Positions 429 through 52,071 of a stretch of DNA of 64,000 nt are shown here, piece by piece. The stretch's first letter is position 1. Each line of letters begins with the position of its first letter. The notes beneath the pieces were generated by a model. It did not search any database. It worked only from the letters and a program-made list of their open reading frames with translations, and was not told the DNA's origin. The DNA lies in IMG/VR virus record IMGVR_UViG_3300028536_000014, positions 62,001 to 126,000 of that record; one strand, written 5' to 3'. Both the position numbers and the translations under genes were made by a program.

Positions 429-3098
429 TTAAAAGAGAGCGGGCAACGACTGCCCACTGTCGGTAGTTGCCCAGCCAAGTGTACGAATTTGGTTATAGAT
501 ACGAAGAGCGATAAATTTATCACCGAAGCTATTTGGATGTTCGAAATCATTATTAGCGTGGTCTCGCATTCCACTAGGAATTTGTCCATTAGCAAGATCA
601 ATCGCATCGGTACTTCCATTGCTGTACGCACCATAATTATCCGGAACAAAACCTATGTAAGCCATCTCAGCTGTTGTAGGTGGTGAGTTATTGACCTCAA
701 CATAAGTCAACGGACCCTGCGCTTGAATAGCTGTATTGATTGTTATCTGAGCAGCGTGATCGGTCATATTACCGGCGATGCTAATAATCGATACTCGTAA
801 CTGTTTCTGATTGTACGATTTAATATAAGCTTTACCCAATGTTAAATCTGTAGTGATAGCGGTTTGATTAGGACCATTACGACCCCATAGACAGATTTGT
901 ACAAAAGTCTGAAGAGATACACCGATATCGGTAACAAATGCTGCACCACCAGACGGTATTGTTACCGTACTTGTTGGCCCAGTAGATGGGGTAAATGTCA
1001 TACCTGTAGGTTGACCATTACCATCATAACCGGTAGCGTTTAATGTACCATGAACAGAAGTAGAAACTCCACCTACTGTACCCGTAACGGTACCTGTTAC
1101 AGTTCCAATGTTACCAGAAGTCTGATTGGTGATAAGACCAACTGTGAACCCAACAGCTAATGCTGAAGTACTTCCAGACGGGATTTGATTACTTGGAAAT
1201 GTTAACAAAGTAGGATTACCACCTTGTAATGCTACAATCTGATCAGCGGTATAACCACCAACTCCATACCGACTTGTTGTATATTTGGTTGCACCACCCG
1301 CTGCCAAAAATGTACCAAGTTGTGCCATATATGTTGTGCCAGCTGGATGCGAACTATAAGTTTCGCTATCACCAATACCAACAAAAGTACTATCAGCATT
1401 AACAGGCCATAGTTGTGTACTGGTCCCATCTGCTTTACAATACATCTCACGTCCGTCTCCATCACTCCAAAATAAGACATTATTGTTATTGTCTAATTCT
1501 GGATTACGATAAGGAGATGAACCGGAAGTTAATTGCAAACTCTGAGATGTGGTTTTGTTAAATGAATGGATTTGCAGAATTCCATTAACATCGTATCGAG
1601 ACTGTACTGTAAATGAATTATTAGCACTTGCACTACCACCTCCACCAAATCGAGTGGAAAGGTTGACTGTGGGTAAATCAGCCATTTTAGCATCACTCGG
1701 TATCATCATCCGAGATGGAGAAAACCCATTGGCTTTATCCCATTCAAATAACAACCGATTAGCCCAAGTAGCACTTAGAACCCCAGTACCATCAAACTGT
1801 TGCCCTACACCAATCAGCATAGAACTAATAATAGATGACAACAATCGCGATGTAATAGCTGATGTAACATCATCATCTATTGTTGTATTTGCTGGTAATG
1901 TTGCTTTTCGTGGATAAAATCCATTCGTGGGATCTATTGTTGCATAAAGTCGATTACTAATTAAGATATCGAGTTCTGTTCCTGGTGCGTTATATAAATT
2001 CAGTTGGTTGAAAAACCCACCAATGGCATCACTAAAGATACGTGATACAAGTGTAATAGCAGATTGATCATCCATTGTGGTATTGCTAGCAGATAATATC
2101 GCTTTATAGAGTTGGACTCCAGCGGTTGTTACTTCTGCATAGAGTCTATTACCAATTATAACTTGAAAAGAACCAGAACTTAAATAGTCGTTAAGTGCTA
2201 TAAGAGTTTTAGCCAACGGATCAAGTACGTTATGAATGATTGTATCTGCAGTAGCTCGAGCTGCTGCTTCAGCAATAGTACCTGTGGATTGTCCTGCAAA
2301 TGTAATTGCTGTCGTACCTATTGTAATTGAACCAGATGCTTGTTGACATAAATAAGTCCAACCCGTATTATTGGTTCCATCTGTTATCTGCAAACAAGCG
2401 TTACCAAGCCCGTTTGCATTATTCTCAGTACTGCGACGAGTCAATACTGCTGCAACACCTGTAGCTCCAGCGGTAGTGCAGTGATAGACACCGTTTTTAA
2501 ATTGATTTGGAGATGGTTCGTCTTTTACAACAACATCATCACTTAGTGCGACTGTCTTACCATCTACAGTCAACACACCTGTTGCTGTAACTGTTATGAT
2601 ACCAGACGAATAAGTATTGGTTGGTAATACACCATTTGTAGCAAGTCTTGCCGATGGTCTATTAGTCTCAAAAGTTGCAACAGTTTGAGCAGTATTGGCA
2701 TATGTAGCTGCATCTGTTACTGAGTTACTAATACTAGCTAATGCAGATGCAATCGTATCTAAATTTCCCTTCATGGTAACGGGTTTAGGTACGATAGAAC
2801 TAACAGCGGTCAATTTAACTTCACCATCGGTCCAAGAACTCGAACTCACTAAAATGAATTGGAATCCAACAACATCGACGAAGACGTCAGTATTAGTACC
2901 ATTTTCTAAAATAATAATGTTTCCATTTACATCGTAAAGAGTAAGTGGATATCCTTGACCAGTTTGTGCGATATAACCTTCAATGATAAGATTGGCATTA
3001 TAAACACCACCAATATTTAAACCAATACAAGCAGTACCTTCTGAAATAGGTATTCTGAGATAATCGGATGAATTAACAAGCTTCTTTCTAAAGAGCAT
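429..3098 (-). CDS. Tail fibre/spike-like protein with C-terminal SGNH(GDSL)-like hydrolase domain
   Basis: 889 aa, G/T/S-rich; fibre motif RLATNG..TVDG..LSDDVVVKD...NGVY...TR; SGNH-like blocks FVGIGDS, WGRNG and DFEHPN. Confidence 0.65.
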   Translation of the reverse strand: MLFRKKLVNSSDYLRIPISEGTACIGLNIGGVYNANLIIEGYIAQTGQGYPLTLYDVNGNIIILENGTNTDVFVDVVGFQFILVSSSSWTDGEVKLTAVSSIVPKPVTMKGNLDTIASALASISNSVTDAATYANTAQTVATFETNRPSARLATNGVLPTNTYSSGIITVTATGVLTVDGKTVALSDDVVVKDEPSPNQFKNGVYHCTTAGATGVAAVLTRRSTENNANGLGNACLQITDGTNNTGWTYLCQQASGSITIGTTAITFAGQSTGTIAEAAARATADTIIHNVLDPLAKTLIALNDYLSSGSFQVIIGNRLYAEVTTAGVQLYKAILSASNTTMDDQSAITLVSRIFSDAIGGFFNQLNLYNAPGTELDILISNRLYATIDPTNGFYPRKATLPANTTIDDDVTSAITSRLLSSIISSMLIGVGQQFDGTGVLSATWANRLLFEWDKANGFSPSRMMIPSDAKMADLPTVNLSTRFGGGGSASANNSFTVQSRYDVNGILQIHSFNKTTSQSLQLTSGSSPYRNPELDNNNNVLFWSDGDGREMYCKADGTSTQLWPVNADSTFVGIGDSETYSSHPAGTTYMAQLGTFLAAGGATKYTTSRYGVGGYTADQIVALQGGNPTLLTFPSNQIPSGSTSALAVGFTVGLITNQTSGNIGTVTGTVTGTVGGVSTSVHGTLNATGYDGNGQPTGMTFTPSTGPTSTVTIPSGGAAFVTDIGVSLQTFVQICLWGRNGPNQTAITTDLTLGKAYIKSYNQKQLRVSIISIAGNMTDHAAQITINTAIQAQGPLTYVEVNNSPPTTAEMAYIGFVPDNYGAYSNGSTDAIDLANGQIPSGMRDHANNDFEHPNSFGDKFIALRIYNQIRTLGWATTDSGQSLPALF

Positions 3099-10652: not shown

Positions 10653-10895
10653 CTGTCTTTTTCATTGCTGCATTGATCCTTCACTTCTGATCTCTGCAAA
10701 CAGATGTGTGCACACACATCGTCATTTTCATTTGTTGTCAGCACGGTGCATAGGTGAGTTCACGTGCGCATATCATTTCTTCCTGTCATAAGCTACCTAC
10801 TTGTTATTTCCACAAGCCGGATTTTTCAGTAGCCCAAACGTGTTTAGTATCCCTAAAATATTAAACACAACCTTCCGCTATTGGCCCTACAAAAC

Positions 10896-11041
10896 TGGTC
10901 AGTCACGGTGTGATTCGAACACACAGCCAAATTGGTCCTTACGCCGAACACCCAATTTGGTACCAACTTTCCATTATCGATATCATGAGTCTCGATAACT
11001 TCTTTGCTAGTAACGTCTACCGTAATTCCGCCACGCGACTG
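10896..11041 (-). tRNA. Non-canonical 146-nt tRNA-Leu-like RNA with extended anticodon and variable arms
   Basis: Acceptor (C)AGTCGCG/CGTGACT(G), discriminator A, CCA; Leu-type D arm TGGCGGAATTACGGTAGACG; T arm GTGTG-TTCGAAT-CACAC. Confidence 0.7.
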
Positions 11042-11049
11042 TTTGAAAA

Positions 11050-11153
11050 TGGCGATCACTCTAGGATTCGAACCCAGCCCCTTTCCGATCGTGTTCAATA
11101 GGCTCTTTGTTTCCTATCGTTCCTATAGACCGAACTGCTTCATCCCAGTACTC
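11050..11153 (-). tRNA. Non-canonical tRNA-like RNA (104 nt), identity unclear
   Basis: T arm CTGGG-TTCGAAT-CCTAG, acceptor GAGTACT/AGTGATC (6 of 7 pairs), G-CCA end; no 7-nt anticodon loop. Confidence 0.55.
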
Positions 11154-11241
11154 GTCTTATACTCAATCAAAGATACTCTCTAGAATTCTCTCTGATCTTT
11201 CTTTGGTTTTCCTGTTCTCTTAGCTTAGTGACCATTGACTA

Positions 11242-11703
11242 TTATGCCGCTAAAGCGGCATCGATTGCATTGATGGCATATAACGTAAAATTAGTTATTT
11301 CTTTACCATCAGAACCCAATTGTGTTATTCCAGCCGTACGAAACTTAACCCTGTCTTTGAATGCATTGGGGTTTTGGTTGAATAGATTTTGTAAAACTAA
11401 CCCTTGTGGTGTTCTAAGAAGACGTATATCGGCAAATAAACTACCATCTTTAATGGTCAGTCTTTCTACGCGATGACTAACTTTGTCTTCAGGAACTTTA
11501 AGAGCGTCGTATGGATCTGGTAACGTTCTTAAATCAGGCATTCCAATTTGTCCAAATATCGGAAACTCACTATTCTTTAAAGTCCGAGACACAACGTCAG
11601 ATGAATAGATTCTGTCATTTTTATTGGGTTTATCCAACGTCATGACTTCGACATCATGTACGATAATGTCTCGTGTAATACAATCGCAATCTTCATCGTA
11701 CAT
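11242..11703 (-). CDS. T4 gp21-like prohead protease homologue with apparently substituted catalytic residues
   Basis: NKNDRIY...FGQIGMP...VSHRV..L..KDG.L.ADIRLL.TPQG..L...FRTAG, resembling NRNGR.Y/GELGHP/VSH/TP.G/SSRG. Confidence 0.55.
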   Translation of the reverse strand: MYDEDCDCITRDIIVHDVEVMTLDKPNKNDRIYSSDVVSRTLKNSEFPIFGQIGMPDLRTLPDPYDALKVPEDKVSHRVERLTIKDGSLFADIRLLRTPQGLVLQNLFNQNPNAFKDRVKFRTAGITQLGSDGKEITNFTLYAINAIDAALAA

Positions 11704-11739
11704 GATGTCTCCTTGAATTCATCACAAATTGTTTTGAAA

Positions 11740-11994
11740 CTAGTGTCCGTAATTACAACCGATCTTGGCTCTTTGACCATTCACTTCGATAATGGTATCG
11801 AAAATACCGCAACATCCTTCATCACGAGCTCTTTGATATTTATCCAAAGCAGCCTCGTCATTCAGATATGCGAATCGACGATTATCGATGCAGTGATCGT
11901 CCACATGTCTTTCCATCCACTCAAGAGCTTCTTCTTGAGTAGCAAAACTTCTTTCTTCTTCTCCGTCGGATGACGTGAAATCGACGATTGTCAT
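11740..11994 (-). CDS. Hypothetical acidic protein
   Basis: 84-aa ORF. Confidence 0.5.
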   Translation of the reverse strand: MTIVDFTSSDGEEERSFATQEEALEWMERHVDDHCIDNRRFAYLNDEAALDKYQRARDEGCCGIFDTIIEVNGQRAKIGCNYGH

Positions 11995-12216
11995 ATCGGA
12001 TTCCTTGGATGATGATAGTTAAGCTACTTCAAAAGCTTCGATATGCTTCGAAGAAATAGTCGCGATTAACGGAAAGAAATCAGGGTCCTTCCCTTCTTTG
12101 ATCCATTGTTTGTAAAACTTCTTTTTGAACCTATAGTTCTTCCATGGAACAGATAGATTGTAAAAGAACAAATTGACTTTCTTACGAAAGGTCATACATC
12201 ATCTTTTAATGTTAAG

Positions 12217-13268: not shown

Positions 13269-13360
13269 AGATCAGTGAAGGATGCTATTTCAAGGACGAC
13301 TCCACCGTAATTGGCATCACGGCTTCAAAGTCTCGCATCTATCCTACACATCAAAGATCC
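13269..13360 (-). rRNA. 23S rRNA L1-stalk (H76-H78)-like segment embedded in a phage ncRNA; not a complete rRNA
   Basis: TTGATGTGTAGGATAGATGCGAGACTTTGAAGCCGTGATGCCAATTACGGTGGAGTCGTCCTTGAAATAGCATC: 56 of 74 nt identical to the E. coli sequence as recalled, differences keep pairing. Confidence 0.85.
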
Positions 13361-14150: not shown

Positions 14151-14211
14151 CTGTTATACTTATTTTAATGTTAAAATAAGTTTCGTCCCTTAAAGGACTC
14201 GTCAGTAACAG
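14151..14211 (-). ncRNA. Hammerhead ribozyme (type I)
   Basis: CTGTTA-CTGACGA-GTCC(TTTAAG)GGAC-GAA-ACTTATTTTAA(CA)TTAAAATAAGT-A-TAACAG; predicted cut after GUA, between 14157 and 14156. Confidence 0.9.
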
Positions 14212-14225
14212 TTTTATTCTACAAA

Positions 14226-14301
14226 TGGTGCCCCTGTCTGGTACCGAGCCAGATTCCCTGGCTTACAAAGCCAGACCTCATCCATTAAAGGCTTCAGGGG
14301 C
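14226..14301 (-). tRNA. tRNA-Thr(UGU), atypical T loop
   Basis: GCCCCTG/CAGGGGC acceptor, anticodon loop TTTGTAA, T loop CTCGGTA, CCA. Confidence 0.85.
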
Positions 14302-15012: not shown

Positions 15013-15062
15013 TGGTCCCCGGAGCCGGAATCGAACCGGCACGCCTTACAGCGAGGGATTTT
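15013..15062 (-). pseudogene. 3-prime half (exon 2) of a tRNA-Leu(UAA)-type gene; 5-prime half decayed
   Basis: AAAATCCCTC-variable arm-GCCGGTTCGATTCCGGC-TCCGGGG-A-CCA; upstream exon keeps only AGGGAACTT, with no matching acceptor strand or D arm. Confidence 0.75.
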
Positions 15063-15706
15063 CTTACCACTATAGCTTTCGCTACCATTAAGAAGTATTC
15101 AGCCTTCACTCTTATAGAGTTATTAACTCAGAGCTATTCCTTACTAACTTCTACATGTTTGTGGTCTGGACTGTACCTTAACCTTAGTTCCAACAGAACT
15201 TTTGATGACTCAGCTACACGGTTTCCCGGCTTTTTATCGAAGTTACTTCGCTAGTCAAAGAAATGCTAATTACTAGAATTAGATCATCGCAATGAAAACT
15301 TTAGGTTGTTGCCTACCAGTCTCTACACGTTTTCTTCTCAAGAACAGTCTGTGGAGATCTAATGTTCTATCCCGGTATCATTACTCCCCAACCATTTCTG
15401 GTCACCGGCTCACATCTACCATACGGTAGCTATTGAAGAATTTCGCTCGGTATTAGCATATGAACTGCAACAGACAACTCACTTAGCTTTCACCGACTTT
15501 GACAACATTCACCCTAGCCCTTACCCCGTTGATATTATCTCTGGACGATGATATCTCTATCACCTATTTATAATGGATGCTAGTTTATACGTCTTTCGAT
15601 TGAGTTGTTTCATGAGGGTAGTGAGAGCTTCAACTCACATAAGCTTTTATTCTTCCAACTCTGTTTTACCAACTCATTTTTCGTAGGTGCTCAAATTAAA
15701 GTACTT
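15063..15706 (-). ncRNA. Group I intron, ORF-less (644 nt), in the tRNA-Leu anticodon
   Basis: P1 CTT|AAG with TTTGAG (U.G at the splice site); core motifs AAAGTCGGTGAAAGCT, GCTAATACCGAG, GTAGAGACTG, AAGGTACAGTCC; terminal G. Confidence 0.88.
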
Positions 15707-15738
15707 AAGTTCCCTTTTCTACAAACTACCAACAACAT

Positions 15739-15824
15739 TGGTGCCCAGGGGGGGACTCGAACCCCCAAAAACCACGGGTTTTAAGCCCGCAAAATGTGCC
15801 ATTCTTTATTAGGTTCACCCAGGC
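15739..15824 (-). tRNA. tRNA with UAA anticodon (Leu), enlarged D region and no long variable arm
   Basis: GCCTGGG/CCTGGGC acceptor, GCGGG-CTTAAAA-CCCGT, GGGGG-TTCGAGT-CCCCC, A-CCA. Confidence 0.75.
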
Positions 15825-15833
15825 TAATACAAA

Positions 15834-16697
15834 TCAGAGATAACTGTATTCTAAATCAGCTATCTTTGCAAAACCTTTTCTTCTTACTTGGTGATTAACA
15901 GCATCGTAACTATGACCGGTTTCTTTGATAGCTTCAGTTAAAGAATTATATATCGTTACTAACTTCCTCACGATATCTTTAACACAAACTATTTTGCGAT
16001 ACCCACCAGTTCTATGACCGTTAACAATATTTCCTTCACCAAGCTGTGTCATTTTCTTAAGATCAAGAATTGGCCACGGATTTCCATCAGCATATTTAAA
16101 CGCGTGATAATCAACGTGATAACCAAAGTTAAGACCTTTTCTTAAACATTTAGAAACTGTTGCTGGATGAACTTCAAATCTTTCGGAGAATTCTCTCAAC
16201 GAATACATAAGAAATTCTCTTGGTTCTAAACCAAGATATTTAACTGCGATAGGTTTGTTATCGCTCATAAATCCAGACAATCGTGCATGTTCTACATTCT
16301 CTTTTCCAGTACACCATTCAAGGTTATCTGGAAGATTATGTAGTTGATTTCCATCACAATGATTAACTTCTAAATTACTAAAAGATTTATCTAGATGTCT
16401 AGATGGTCGACCAATGAAAGTTTTTGCTATCAATCGACTAAATTTATGACATACAGGTTTTTTGCCAGGGCTTGTTATAATTACACCTACCGTACCATTA
16501 CCAGAAAGTTGTGGTTTTAACAAGTTACCTGTATGTATGTTTACTATTTTTCCATCTCGACTAACACCAAGTCTTTTGTCATCAGGAAAGTAAAAGAAGT
16601 TATCGAAACCGAGTACCGGTTCAGGATGAACTTCTTCCAAATCAGAAGGATCATTCATCCTTACTACGGCACTCATATCAAGACTCCTGTTGTTCAA
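15834..16697 (-). CDS. Free-standing HNH homing endonuclease (NUMOD4/HNH type)
   Basis: VSRDGKI...LKPQ...RLIAKTFI...VNHCDGNQLHNLPDNLEWCT.KEN..HA. Confidence 0.88.
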   Translation of the reverse strand: MNNRSLDMSAVVRMNDPSDLEEVHPEPVLGFDNFFYFPDDKRLGVSRDGKIVNIHTGNLLKPQLSGNGTVGVIITSPGKKPVCHKFSRLIAKTFIGRPSRHLDKSFSNLEVNHCDGNQLHNLPDNLEWCTGKENVEHARLSGFMSDNKPIAVKYLGLEPREFLMYSLREFSERFEVHPATVSKCLRKGLNFGYHVDYHAFKYADGNPWPILDLKKMTQLGEGNIVNGHRTGGYRKIVCVKDIVRKLVTIYNSLTEAIKETGHSYDAVNHQVRRKGFAKIADLEYSYL

Positions 16698-16750
16698 AAT
16701 GTGTATTCCAGTTCCACCACGCTTCCACAGTCGTGTGACACATTATTGCA

Positions 16751-36593: not shown

Positions 36594-37408
36594 CTACCAC
36601 TATAGCTTTCGCTACCAATAAAAAGCGTTCAATGTTTCACTCGTATTGAGTTATTAGCTCAACGTGCTATTATTTACTAACTTTACATGTTTGTGGTCTT
36701 GACTCTTTTAAGCATATAGCTCAGCTTCATCTCGCTAGAGGTTCTATTAGTTACTTGCTAGACTTACACTTGGTCTGATTCTTAAAGATTACTTCCGTCT
36801 GTCGGGAAAGATATGACTCTTTACTCCTAAGATTTCATCTATTCAGAAATAAGACTCTTCGCTTCCCGTCATCACTTTCACGCTGTATTAGGCGCTATTT
36901 AGCTTGTTGCCATTGAGTCTCTACACGTTCTAATCCAATTACCTGTTGTGCACATTTACTGTCACAACGCGGGTATAAACACGGTATATACATCACCGCA
37001 CTCGTTTAACCGATCAGTAATTCAGATTCGTTTCGCTCGGTATTAGCGTAGGATGGACCACTCATTCATTGAAGACTTTTTGTGTTCCCTATAGCTATAA
37101 CCGACTTTGACAACATTCACCAACATCTATATTAAGACATGATCGCCATGGAGACTAGGATTTCTCCGGTATTCCATATAGCTATTATCCATATCCTTCA
37201 GCTTGCTGAAATCACATTTCTCAAAGAAGACTGAGGGTCTGCTATTCAGTAGATGTTTATACGTCCTTTCGGATTGAGTTGTTTTCGCATTTTTAGATGG
37301 GGGTTCTCATACTTCCCCGGCAGCTCAGATTTAGGCTGAGTCCCAAACTTTTACCGTGCCGATTTTACCAACTCATTTTTCGTAGGTGCCCTTACATTAC
37401 ACGGTTAA
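36594..37408 (-). ncRNA. Group I intron, ORF-less (815 nt), paralogous to the tRNA-Leu intron
   Basis: Six shared blocks with 15063-15706; P1 TCT|TTA with TAAGGG; P7 GACTC/GAGTC; terminal G. Confidence 0.85.
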
Positions 37409-37820
37409 AGAAGTATTTCTACTCCCCAGTTCCTCAGGAACTGATGTCCTTTCCTCACCGTAAGTTCTTAAACAATGGACACTTTTGGCTGGTCAAAAAT
37501 TCACTTGTTCGTCAGACCATTATGGCATATACCTCACGATCGCCTGCAATTGAGAACAAGTATAGGAGAGTTTACAGTTCAGGAAGACGCAAAAAGGCGT
37601 CTCTCGTAACTGCTACAGAGGGCGAAAGGTCGACCCCAAACTCACAAACTTTAACAAACTAAAAATCTAAGTTTCGTTCGCACGACATAGGTCACCACGA
37701 CAATTGCGATATGTCGACTATTAAGATGATTCAGGCACGAAACACCACCCTTGACACAAGAGAACCAGATCGTGTTACCGGTTACTCCGTCTGAATTTGA
37801 ATTTATCAATAGCTTTCGCT
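37409..37820 (-). ncRNA. 5-prime exon of the unidentified large structured RNA (5-prime boundary uncertain)
   Basis: No minus-strand ORF; hairpins GGAGTA-GAAA-TACTTC, CAGTTCC/GGAACTG, GACGC/GCGTC, CTTGTTC/GAACAAG. Confidence 0.5.
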
Positions 37821-50309: not shown

Positions 50310-50492
50310 TTAATCTTCCTCAGCTAACCAAGTTCCTACTGTTGCTATGATAGGTTTTGGTAAACGGATATTTCCAGATATTCTTAAAGGCTCTTCCATG
50401 TTCCAAATATTAAATTTTGGACTTAAAGAATACCACATATCTGCCATGGCTTCATCCAGAGACAAACACAACGAGCAAGAATCTCCATCAAA
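50310..50492 (-). CDS. Exon 2 of the non-virion RNA polymerase beta-prime-like subunit
   Basis: Begins TTT GAT GGA GAT (FDGD), completing NAD-FDGD; continues P..N....P..ISGN..LP.P...WL. Confidence 0.9.
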   Translation of the reverse strand, partial: FDGDSCSLCLSLDEAMADMWYSLSPKFNIWNMEEPLRISGNIRLPKPIIATVGTWLAEED

Positions 50493-50832
50493 CCTTACCT
50501 TCAAGTAGAATCGTTACTTCTACTCCGTGTTGATACACAGCTCTAACTTTCATTAGAAGAGGAGAACATATCACGATCTCTTTCGAGACCCCTTCCATTT
50601 CAGCTCACTTGAGCCTACTCCGCGCTACCGGATGTTCGTTGAACGTTTTTCTGACGGATCAGAAACTTCGCTGCGGATTATCCAATCTTCTTATTTGTTA
50701 CCATACCTGAGTGATTAGTTCAGCCATTGTTATATCACTATAACAACTTGGTATAAGAAGCTCTAAAGGACTTTCCCGACAATTAGAAAGGTGCTATTCA
50801 GATATCACTATCTGAAAGGACTAAAACTGTTA
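50493..50832 (-). ncRNA. Group I intron, ORF-less (340 nt), in the RNAP catalytic motif
   Basis: P1 GAT|TAA with TTAGTC; AATTGTCGGGAAA, AATCCGCAGC, GTTCAACGAACAT/ATGTTC (P7); terminal G. Confidence 0.92.
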
Positions 50833-52071
50833 ATCAGCGTTCATGCTCGTTGTGATCAAAATACTGACTCCAAATGTCAGATCCTTCGGATCGTTTTTAA
50901 CTCTTGGAATATAAACCTTCTGAATGGAACCTTGAAGCAAAGATGGAAATCGATTAAACAAGACTGGATAACGCCCATCTTTAGTATCAGAGATAATTTC
51001 TTTCAGATATTGATCAAGCAGTGGATGATAAATTTCAGTATGAGATAGAAGAAGTCCCACAGCGTCATTAATCAACATTCCACTTTTCTTGATAAGCTTG
51101 TTAATGAGCATCGGTCTGAAAATCGTTAAACCAACACCCCAAGGTATTTCAATTTCATCATATCGATGTGCGTCTGTTATCGAAGAGATAACAGCTCGTG
51201 CGGAATAATCGAATCGAGATCCACCGATATAATGTCGAAAGAGTCCAGACTTCTTAGCAACGATCGTCTTGAAATAACTGTCATAAAACTTACAGCTAAG
51301 AAGATACATCGCTCTAGCTGTACGATTTTCTTTAACAGAAACTGTTTGATTATGAAAATCTTTATCGATCGATACCAACATTTCGATAGCTTCAAGTGCT
51401 AACGGAACGGTACTGTCGATATAAGTGGCCAGAGATGTTTTCTCGATAACCAAGAGAGACTTATTCAGTAAAGGAATATAATCCGAGAACAAAATATCTT
51501 TCTTAACTGTTAAAAGATCAGCAAGATAATCTCGTCCTATTCCTTTGATTTTAAAATCTTTCAGACTCATCAAGAATTCGATGATCGATTGAAAATTCTG
51601 AACGAAGTAATTATATCCACGTTGAATACCAGCTTGTTCAATTTTATCTACGACATCAGGACGATTGATCTGAGGTGAATATGTTGTATCAGTTAACCAT
51701 CTCAAGATGCTAAATTTTGATTTGCTAAATCGATAATCCAACATAATCCAGATTATTGGTGACATCAATTTCTCAACACCAATAGGTTTTCGAAACCAAA
51801 CCAACGGTTCAATGGTGTTTTCAATCGCTGCACTGACGAGTGTGTCGCAGTGTTCACAAATCGTATTCTTACTGAATTCTCCTTTTGTCATTCCACATCG
51901 ACACGAAGGAAGAATTGTCACCATGTCACTTGAATAAGTTGTGGTGATTAATTGTTCAATACGTTCACGATCTTTCGTGGTAGTGTTAAGCAAGTCGTTT
52001 ATGATAATCGGAGGGTTCTTGAGCCCCTCGAACATCATATTGTTATCGATCAAACTCTGGATAATAGGCAC
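50833..52071 (-). CDS. Exon 1 of the non-virion RNA polymerase beta-prime-like subunit (phiKZ gp55-like); spliced product 473 aa
   Basis: Zinc finger CRCG...CEHC, K.GLFR..I.GSR.DYSARAVIS, FNRFPSL, ends SMNAD. Confidence 0.9.

Follow-up and report, generated by a model that had tools for sequence, protein, structure and literature searches.

The locus described here is best read as a rearranged tRNA-Leu(UAA) pseudogene whose group I intron can probably still fold, and we give this reading a probability of about 0.6. It lies within the window, the stretch of 64,000 nucleotides that we analysed (bases 62001-126000 of record IMGVR_UViG_3300028536_000014). We propose that the ancestor was an intron-containing tRNA-Leu(UAA) gene in a phage tRNA island and that a single rearrangement removed or overwrote approximately its first 26 positions, namely the acceptor 5' strand and the D arm. 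It would have spared the anticodon-stem strand as well as the group I intron and the 3' exon, both in full (Table 1). Break repair or partial gene conversion tied to the adjacent HNH homing endonuclease would be the most likely cause; the case for this enzyme as the source of the damage is circumstantial.

The intron is a genuine and structurally intact member of its family as judged from its sequence, because 81 of the 86 columns that are invariant in an alignment of short family members are identical in the window intron. It is inserted at the CUU/AAAA junction, between U34 and A35 of tRNA-Leu(UAA). At the 5' splice site, CUU (15709-15707) pairs with a GAG guide (15692-15690) to form P1, in which the last exon base is the U of a U-G pair, and UUU (15695-15693) pairs with AAA (15062-15060) of the 3' exon to form P10. 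The catalytic core P3-P8, including P7, is present together with the P1 U-G pair, P10 and the terminal omega-G, placing the element among the group I introns. The same junction as in 24 distinct family genes, along with sequence homology, places it in the tRNA-Leu(UAA) anticodon-loop intron family. A local cmscan search matched the Rfam model Intron_gpI (RF00028) at 15571-15151 with 43.3 bits (E 1.9e-9), below the gathering score of 50. Four peripheral expansions, in P2, P6, P8 and P9, correspond to the stretches between collinear nhmmer matches to the family HMM, and no ORF longer than 45 aa was found on the minus strand of the intron. The folding energy z-score of the whole intron was -0.99, a measure that is not informative for an RNA as long as 644 nt.

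Table 1. Features of the interrupted tRNA-Leu(UAA) locus, its neighbours and the paralogous intron, with positions in the window.
Feature	Position	Strand	Basis or remark
3' exon, tRNA-Leu(UAA) positions 35-76	15013-15062	-	sequence; 15013 is the A of CCA
Group I intron (copy 1)	15063-15706	-	644 nt; ends in omega-G 15063; no ORF
P3	15506-15501/15313-15308	-	explicit helix check, full pairing
P4	15496-15493/15450-15447	-	explicit helix check, full pairing
P6	15440-15435/15337-15332	-	explicit helix check, full pairing
P7	15321-15318/15172-15169	-	explicit helix check, full pairing
P8	15307-15304/15183-15180	-	explicit helix check, full pairing
P9	15164-15161/15070-15067	-	explicit helix check, full pairing
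P9a, GAAA-capped hairpin	15084-15073	-	explicit helix check, full pairing
Remnant 5' exon, 32 nt	15707-15738	-	sequence; 15738 is the first base past the CCA of the upstream tRNA
Aberrant intronless tRNA(UAA)	15739-15824	-	ARAGORN; Rfam tRNA 32.6 bits (gathering score 29)
Free-standing HNH homing endonuclease gene	15834-16697, likely ATG 16676	-	PHROG 59, E 4.5e-27
Candidate second relic	16665-16726	-	strongest, though weak, match in the genome (9.1 bits, E 0.39) to the family '5' exon plus intron start' profile
Paralogous intron copy 2	36594-37412	-	exact 22-nt 3'-end motif; pairwise alignment; nhmmer segments; 5' boundary inferred

The intron belongs to a large family in phage tRNA genes. 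Its BLAST homologue resides in Agrobacterium phage Atu_ph07 (MF403008.1, ~112.9-113.3 kb; L001 2714-3075), where a complete tRNA-Leu(UAA) gene carries a 278-nt intron at the same insertion site; the last 22 nt of the two introns are identical. The interrupted Atu_ph07 gene has no tRNA annotation, and the annotation places the 'hypothetical protein' AUZ94936.1 over it. ARAGORN detects it only when introns are allowed, and the default run misses all family genes. The 22-nt intron end was found in 79 IMG/VR stretches (L002-L080), so that the family comprises at least 79 viral contigs. In nearly all of the 79 it is followed by a tRNA 3' half, mostly of Leu(UAA) and also of Arg, Met, Thr, Asn, Ser and Lys. 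The U34/A35 site is used in ~40 distinct phage tRNA-Leu(UAA) genes. With introns allowed at the default threshold, ARAGORN recovered a whole interrupted tRNA in most related loci, wherever enough upstream sequence was present; the exceptions are a few copies in protein genes (L031, L080) or in other contexts. Among the family loci examined, only in the window copy are the intron and 3' exon intact while the 5' half is missing. Eighteen short members align well, and their consensus fold contains 24 pairs with compensatory changes. Two short members exceed the Rfam threshold (62.1 and 58.8 bits), whereas long members, like the window copy, fall below it. In one contig (L007, ~1240-1760, minus strand), the end of a family intron and a complete intronless tRNA-Leu(UAA) downstream of it are 9 nt apart, a further case of intron and tRNA-Leu combined by rearrangement, in the reverse order to the window. 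A permuted tmRNA (L021 12168-12417, plus strand; Rfam 83.5 bits) is encoded in a viral contig of 155 kb whose tRNA-Leu(UAA) also bears an intron.

The window holds a second, diverged copy of the intron, whose pairwise homology to the first extends from GCACCUACG to GUGGUA. It has no tRNA beside it and lies in a 1.8-kb non-coding stretch that ends with a terminator-like hairpin near 36115-36080. Both copies have lineage-specific core changes in common, and the guide region of copy 2 is unlike that of copy 1. P8 reads AAGC/GCUU in copy 2 and AACC/GGUU in copy 1, a compensatory change as judged by eye. Rfam returned no match for copy 2. A third group I intron, of a different family, was located at 50541-50852 on the minus strand (Rfam 59.5 bits), between the ORFs at 50830-52071 and 50310-50504, and presumably splits a protein gene.

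We scored the two exons separately against profiles built from the 24 distinct family genes, folded them as two strands, and ran the unspliced DNA through ARAGORN with introns allowed. The 3' exon consists, in order, of AAAA, the anticodon-stem strand UCCCU, a paired long variable arm, a T arm with a UUCGAUU loop, the acceptor strand UCCGGGG, A73 and an encoded CCA. The T arm, variable arm, discriminator base and CCA expected of a tRNA are thus all in place. This exon scores 37.9 bits against the family 3'-exon profile, compared with a leave-one-out family median of 33.1 (range 11.4-47.0). Over the 77 nt that comprise this exon and the final 27 nt of the intron, identity to a related viral contig (L068) is 93.5%.

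The 5' side is very different. The remnant 5' exon is just 32 nt long because the CCA of the upstream tRNA ends at 15739. It keeps AGGGA (15715-15711), all five bases of which pair with UCCCU; an extra A and then CUU come next. The extra A results in an anticodon loop of 8 nt, ACUUAAAA. Neither a D stem nor an acceptor 5' strand is present; the locus has no 7-bp acceptor stem, no D arm with G18-G19 and no 7-nt anticodon loop. In the 54 nt that precede the splice site, the family 5'-exon profile found no match; the scores of family members against it are 16.5-34.6 bits. The two-strand fold of the exons gave only the anticodon stem and an irregular, wobble-rich closing helix that takes in A73 and C74. 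ARAGORN reported no tRNA in the unspliced locus DNA even at very relaxed thresholds.

These results agree in large part with the preliminary description of this DNA. It had recognized an intact group I intron in a tRNA-Leu(UAA) gene without a usable 5' half, and both the fully paired helices and the invariant columns bear this out. Its placement of the insertion at the known tRNA-Leu(UAA) position is reinforced by the use of the same site throughout the phage genes, and the 3' half, which it called perfect through CCA, scores above the family median. The 8-nt anticodon loop that it predicted for the spliced product follows from AGGGA and the extra A. Its account of the 5' remnant was right in that an anticodon-stem strand persists without D stem or acceptor strand, but too narrow, as the 32 nt also preserve a D-loop-like trace (TTGGTAG / TTTGTAGA) similar to that of tRNA-Leu.

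Next to be considered is where the missing 5' half might be. The complete 244,725-bp genome was searched on both strands with the family 5'-half profile (nhmmer) and by pattern search, and no matching 5' half was found; the best genome-wide profile matches had E values of 0.17 or higher and stems that do not match. A split or trans-assembled tRNA with its 5' half elsewhere, one of the options raised at the outset, is therefore not supported, since the complete genome contains no such half. The intron is, in addition, in one piece with its own P1. We also considered a single large gene in which the fragment at 16726-16665 would supply the 5' half and the HNH gene and neighbouring tRNA would sit inside a 1.6-kb intron; this was rejected, as the acceptor sequence GGAAGCG and the anticodon-stem sequence GGAGU of the fragment do not pair with the 3' exon. 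The earlier statement that the window holds no acceptor complement is correct for the exact sequence CCCCGGA, which is absent from the minus strand, but not when wobble pairs are tolerated, as CCCUGGG occurs at 15750-15744, inside the 3' end of the upstream tRNA.

This complement raises the alternative that the locus encodes a non-canonical working tRNA, with CCCUGGG as an acceptor strand common to it and to the 3' end of the upstream tRNA, so that one transcript could yield either molecule. All seven positions pair with UCCGGGG (5 Watson-Crick and 2 G-U pairs), and a two-strand, cloverleaf-like fold including this strand reaches -36.8 kcal/mol as against -25.8 for the 32-nt exon. Other oversized tRNA-like RNAs in the same island would also be in keeping with such a molecule. 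Yet the minus strand of the window alone contains ~90 wobble-tolerant 7/7 matches, and the acceptor stems of the family are near-palindromic (CCYGGG), so that the match is likely to have arisen by chance. The resulting molecule would have a D region of ~28 nt, no G18-G19 in the loop, a 13-nt connector and an 8-nt anticodon loop, and ARAGORN rejects it even at very relaxed thresholds. Moreover, use of the strand would destroy the upstream tRNA. We regard a working tRNA of this kind as very improbable.

The neighbourhood of the locus is rich in damaged tRNA sequence. The intronless tRNA(UAA) directly upstream was judged aberrant by alignment with two intronless phage tRNA-Leu(UAA) genes: it has a 7-bp acceptor stem with 2 G-U pairs, an insertion of ~8 nt before the D stem, and a variable arm cut to ~5 nt. 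The HNH gene ends 9 nt upstream of it. The closest homologue of the HNH enzyme, with 37.6% identity, is encoded in a tRNA cluster of Pseudomonas phage D6 (L106 2355-3232), starting 72 nt past an intronless tRNA-Leu(UAA). A more distant homologue in a viral contig (L071 6610-7536) lies ~400 nt downstream of an intron-bearing tRNA-Leu(UAA). The location of these homologues suggests a homing endonuclease lineage tied to the tRNA-Leu(UAA) gene. The candidate second relic comprises a tRNA-Leu-like D arm, an insertion of ~12 nt, an anticodon-stem strand and CUU, followed by a candidate intron start, UGAGUGCC, which overlaps the start codon of the HNH gene. Its position fits the order of D6 and L071, in which tRNA-Leu(UAA) precedes the HNH gene; no 3' exon matching it was found in the genome. 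A possible kinship between the tRNA-like fragment upstream of the HNH gene and the upstream tRNA was discarded because they have only a 9-nt match, which is not significant (p ~0.09 against shuffles).

Further unusual RNAs were observed in the tRNA island. Two oversized tRNA-like RNAs, at 10893-11041 (149 nt) and 11050-11233 (184 nt) on the minus strand, each have a closing stem of 7-8 bp, a T arm with a UUCGAAU loop and a CCA. In the first there are, in addition, a Leu-like D arm, a 9-bp extra arm and the loop CUCAUGA. Neither ARAGORN nor Rfam calls them as tRNA. The 'tRNA-Cys with a 1049-nt intron' that ARAGORN reported at 11050-12193 is spurious, since ORFs occur within the presumed intron and the acceptor stem contains mismatches. 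A hammerhead-like sequence at 14152-14226 (minus strand) scores 34.8 bits against RAGATH-1 hammerhead and 23.4 bits against the type I model, both below the gathering scores. It adjoins the 3' end of a tRNA-Thr called by ARAGORN (14226-14301), a call not shared by the Rfam tRNA model. Where ORFs are sparse between tRNA genes, a 90-nt fragment (13270-13359, minus strand) matches positions 2126-2215 of the bacterial 23S rRNA model with 63.6 bits. These positions are what we take to be the L1-stalk region, and the fragment may be a mimic that binds a ribosomal protein.

Several observations argue for the rearranged pseudogene. One is the sharp asymmetry of the locus, with a 3' exon above the family median beside a 5' region that has no match. 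Since the damage stops after about 26 positions and the intron and 3' exon beyond are perfect, a rearrangement is a better explanation than slow decay by point mutation. Another is that the tRNA-Leu(UAA) pieces lying around the homing endonuclease gene include several that are damaged, and of the options in the preliminary description it is the relic that these pieces favour. Its wording that the 5' half had 'decayed' holds in so far as that half is missing; as a mechanism, decay is probably wrong, given how confined the damage is. The preserved intron and 3' exon would then reflect a recent origin in a single event. In keeping with this, a 2026 article describes the T-even phage homing endonuclease SegB as promoting segmental amplification of anti-defence loci, the defence there cleaving tRNA-Tyr (PMC13096335).

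A slow decay in place would have a redundant gene drifting by point mutation after the upstream intronless tRNA(UAA) took over its task. The position of that second tRNA(UAA), directly upstream, is as expected under this scenario, and the D-loop-like trace suggests descent from a real 5' half. However, drift should have reached both halves and the intron, and yet the 3' exon exceeds the median and the intron keeps its invariant columns while the 5' region has no match. The acceptor strand is missing, not mutated, with no more than 32 nt between the splice site and the CCA of the neighbour, and the would-be replacement is itself aberrant. We therefore consider slow decay unlikely.

If the locus is a rearranged pseudogene, its transcript would be expected to fold and self-splice still, because P1, P10, the exon-exon anticodon stem and the omega-G are all in place. 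The spliced product would be an RNA of ~82 nt without an acceptor stem, which RNase P would not process and which could not be charged; lacking that stem, the element would have no tRNA function. Some considerations weigh against this reading. No close relatives were found with the downstream 157-aa protein and three lineage-specific DNA motifs as queries, the matches being the source contig and the Logan contig from the same sample only; hence the intact ancestral gene and the date of the damage are putative. Furthermore, an intron and 3' exon without visible decay would also fit selection for some function. The self-splicing of the Anabaena tRNA-Leu intron reportedly requires anticodon-stem exon pairing (Zaug, McEvoy and Cech, 1993, as cited in PMC3984707). 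By analogy, the surviving AGGGA and CUU are what that intron needs for self-splicing, and splicing itself could be what is maintained.

The source phage is an uncultured phiKZ-like soil jumbo phage with a complete genome. The record is 244,725 bp long, has direct terminal repeats and is rated complete; the phage DNA has a GC content of 37.8%, and the helicase shares no more than 46% identity with its counterparts in phiKZ-like jumbo phages of Burkholderia, Ralstonia, Xanthomonas and Pseudomonas. The phage was found only in one JGI soil metagenome and in the Logan assembly of probably the same sample (SRR7975446). A search of sequencing runs located the locus sequence in one DNA run, the probable source sample, and in no RNA run. 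An assembly chimera, in which the junction of the upstream tRNA and the 32-nt exon was mis-joined from repeated tRNA sequences, comes to mind since tRNA clusters are repetitive and the phage occurs in one sample only. The JGI contig (244,771 bp) and the Logan contig (39,454 bp) are, however, identical across 6.5 kb around the locus, a comparison that is not fully independent because both were probably assembled from the same reads. The genome closes with direct terminal repeats, and the joined sequences have no second copy in it from which a mis-join could have arisen. We hold a chimera to be very unlikely, more so than slow decay or a working tRNA.

The intactness of the intron and 3' exon could also be explained by a function that acts on other RNAs. 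As a half-tRNA device working in the manner of an engineered trans-splicing ribozyme, the guide, GAG preceded by UUU, would bind an RNA ending in CUU-3'OH, such as a tRNA-Leu(UAA) cleaved in its anticodon loop, and ligate a fresh 3' half to it, or the locus would release a half-tRNA as a decoy. The preliminary description had also raised a half-tRNA, as a decoy or a repair substrate, and none of our observations speaks specifically for it. The guide sequence, the ribozyme core and an intact 3' exon with CCA are the architecture that such a device needs, and the 3' exon has no decay. Phage tRNAs have been proposed to counter tRNA-targeting host defences (PMC10264068), and Azoarcus and Tetrahymena group I introns have been turned into trans-splicing ribozymes (PMC3895272). 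A ribozyme of trans-splicing design has no 5' exon of its own and forms P1 with the target RNA only; the window locus departs from this, and its cis 5' exon, with a full P1 and a 5-bp anticodon-stem pairing, would outcompete substrates in trans. Anticodon nucleases leave cyclic-phosphate ends, which would be unusable in the second step of the ribozyme unless the ends were healed, and we detected no RtcB or Rnl2-type (RNA_ligase) ligase in the phage genome. Nor did a potential target emerge from our attempt to infer the host: among 185,579 species genomes, the exact pattern of T arm and acceptor strand was found in no bacterial tRNA-Leu(UAA), the matches being a few tRNA-Leu(CAA) and one tRNA-Asp. 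Finally, none of the ~79 related viral contigs has this design, and the damaged neighbours fit decay better. A half-tRNA device is accordingly a doubtful explanation, slightly ahead of the working tRNA with a borrowed acceptor strand. Its most specific version would be a natural trans-acting ribozyme that mends tRNA: the guide would capture tRNA-Leu(UAA) 5' halves with CUU at their end, supplied by the host or by the aberrant upstream phage tRNA, and the ribozyme would add its own CCA-bearing 3' half. In this way, a tRNA that a host defence had cut or targeted in its anticodon loop would be restored or given a new specificity. We hold it to be less probable still than the device in general; a trans-acting reading, if true, would amount to a ribozyme-based answer to host defences that cleave tRNA.

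Taken as a rearranged pseudogene, the locus by itself is most likely a broken gene and a fairly ordinary one. It indicates that a gene interrupted by a group I intron can be lost while the intron and the exon downstream persist, and that tRNA-Leu(UAA) genes located beside homing endonucleases in jumbo phages are rearranged. The more useful by-product is the large intron family in phage tRNA genes of several isotypes, including one in the cultured phage Atu_ph07. Because default tRNA finders miss the intron-bearing genes, the tRNA repertoires of phages are undercounted.

The type of intron and its insertion site are those of the classic tRNA-Leu(UAA) case, and it is the phage setting that appears to be little described. 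According to a 2014 review, all phage introns then known were in protein-coding genes despite the many phage tRNA genes (PMC3984707). The word 'phage' does not occur in a 2020 survey of tRNA group I introns, and the literature we searched, the coverage of which is incomplete, yielded no later description of group I introns in phage tRNA genes.

Among known systems, the cyanobacterial and plastid tRNA-Leu(UAA) intron resembles that of the window in a comparison of features: both have the U34/A35 insertion, a short P1 whose splice-site pair is U-G, and a closing P9 and GAAA hairpin ahead of the omega-G, and neither contains an ORF. The anticodon stem on which splicing in Anabaena reportedly depends is kept in the window locus. 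The Anabaena tRNA-Leu intron measures ~250 nt; that of the window reaches 644 nt because of its four peripheral expansions. Unlike the cyanobacterial and plastid case, the window intron resides in a phage, and its host gene lacks the acceptor 5' strand and the D arm. The free-standing endonucleases of the SegB type in T4 are similarly encoded between tRNA genes. SegB is a GIY-YIG enzyme, whereas the window enzyme is of the HNH type, with a putative role in the truncation. Split tRNA genes of the Nanoarchaeum type also feature a stand-alone 3' half with T arm and CCA; the window locus has no complementary leader by which two halves might be joined, and the complete genome no separate 5'-half gene. 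Engineered trans-splicing group I ribozymes likewise place a guide-bearing ribozyme on a 3' exon, but the window locus has a cis 5' exon with P1. The closest counterparts are Atu_ph07 and the at least 79 IMG/VR contigs, which have in common with the window a homologous core, the identical 22-nt 3' end, the splice site and the location in a phage tRNA cluster.
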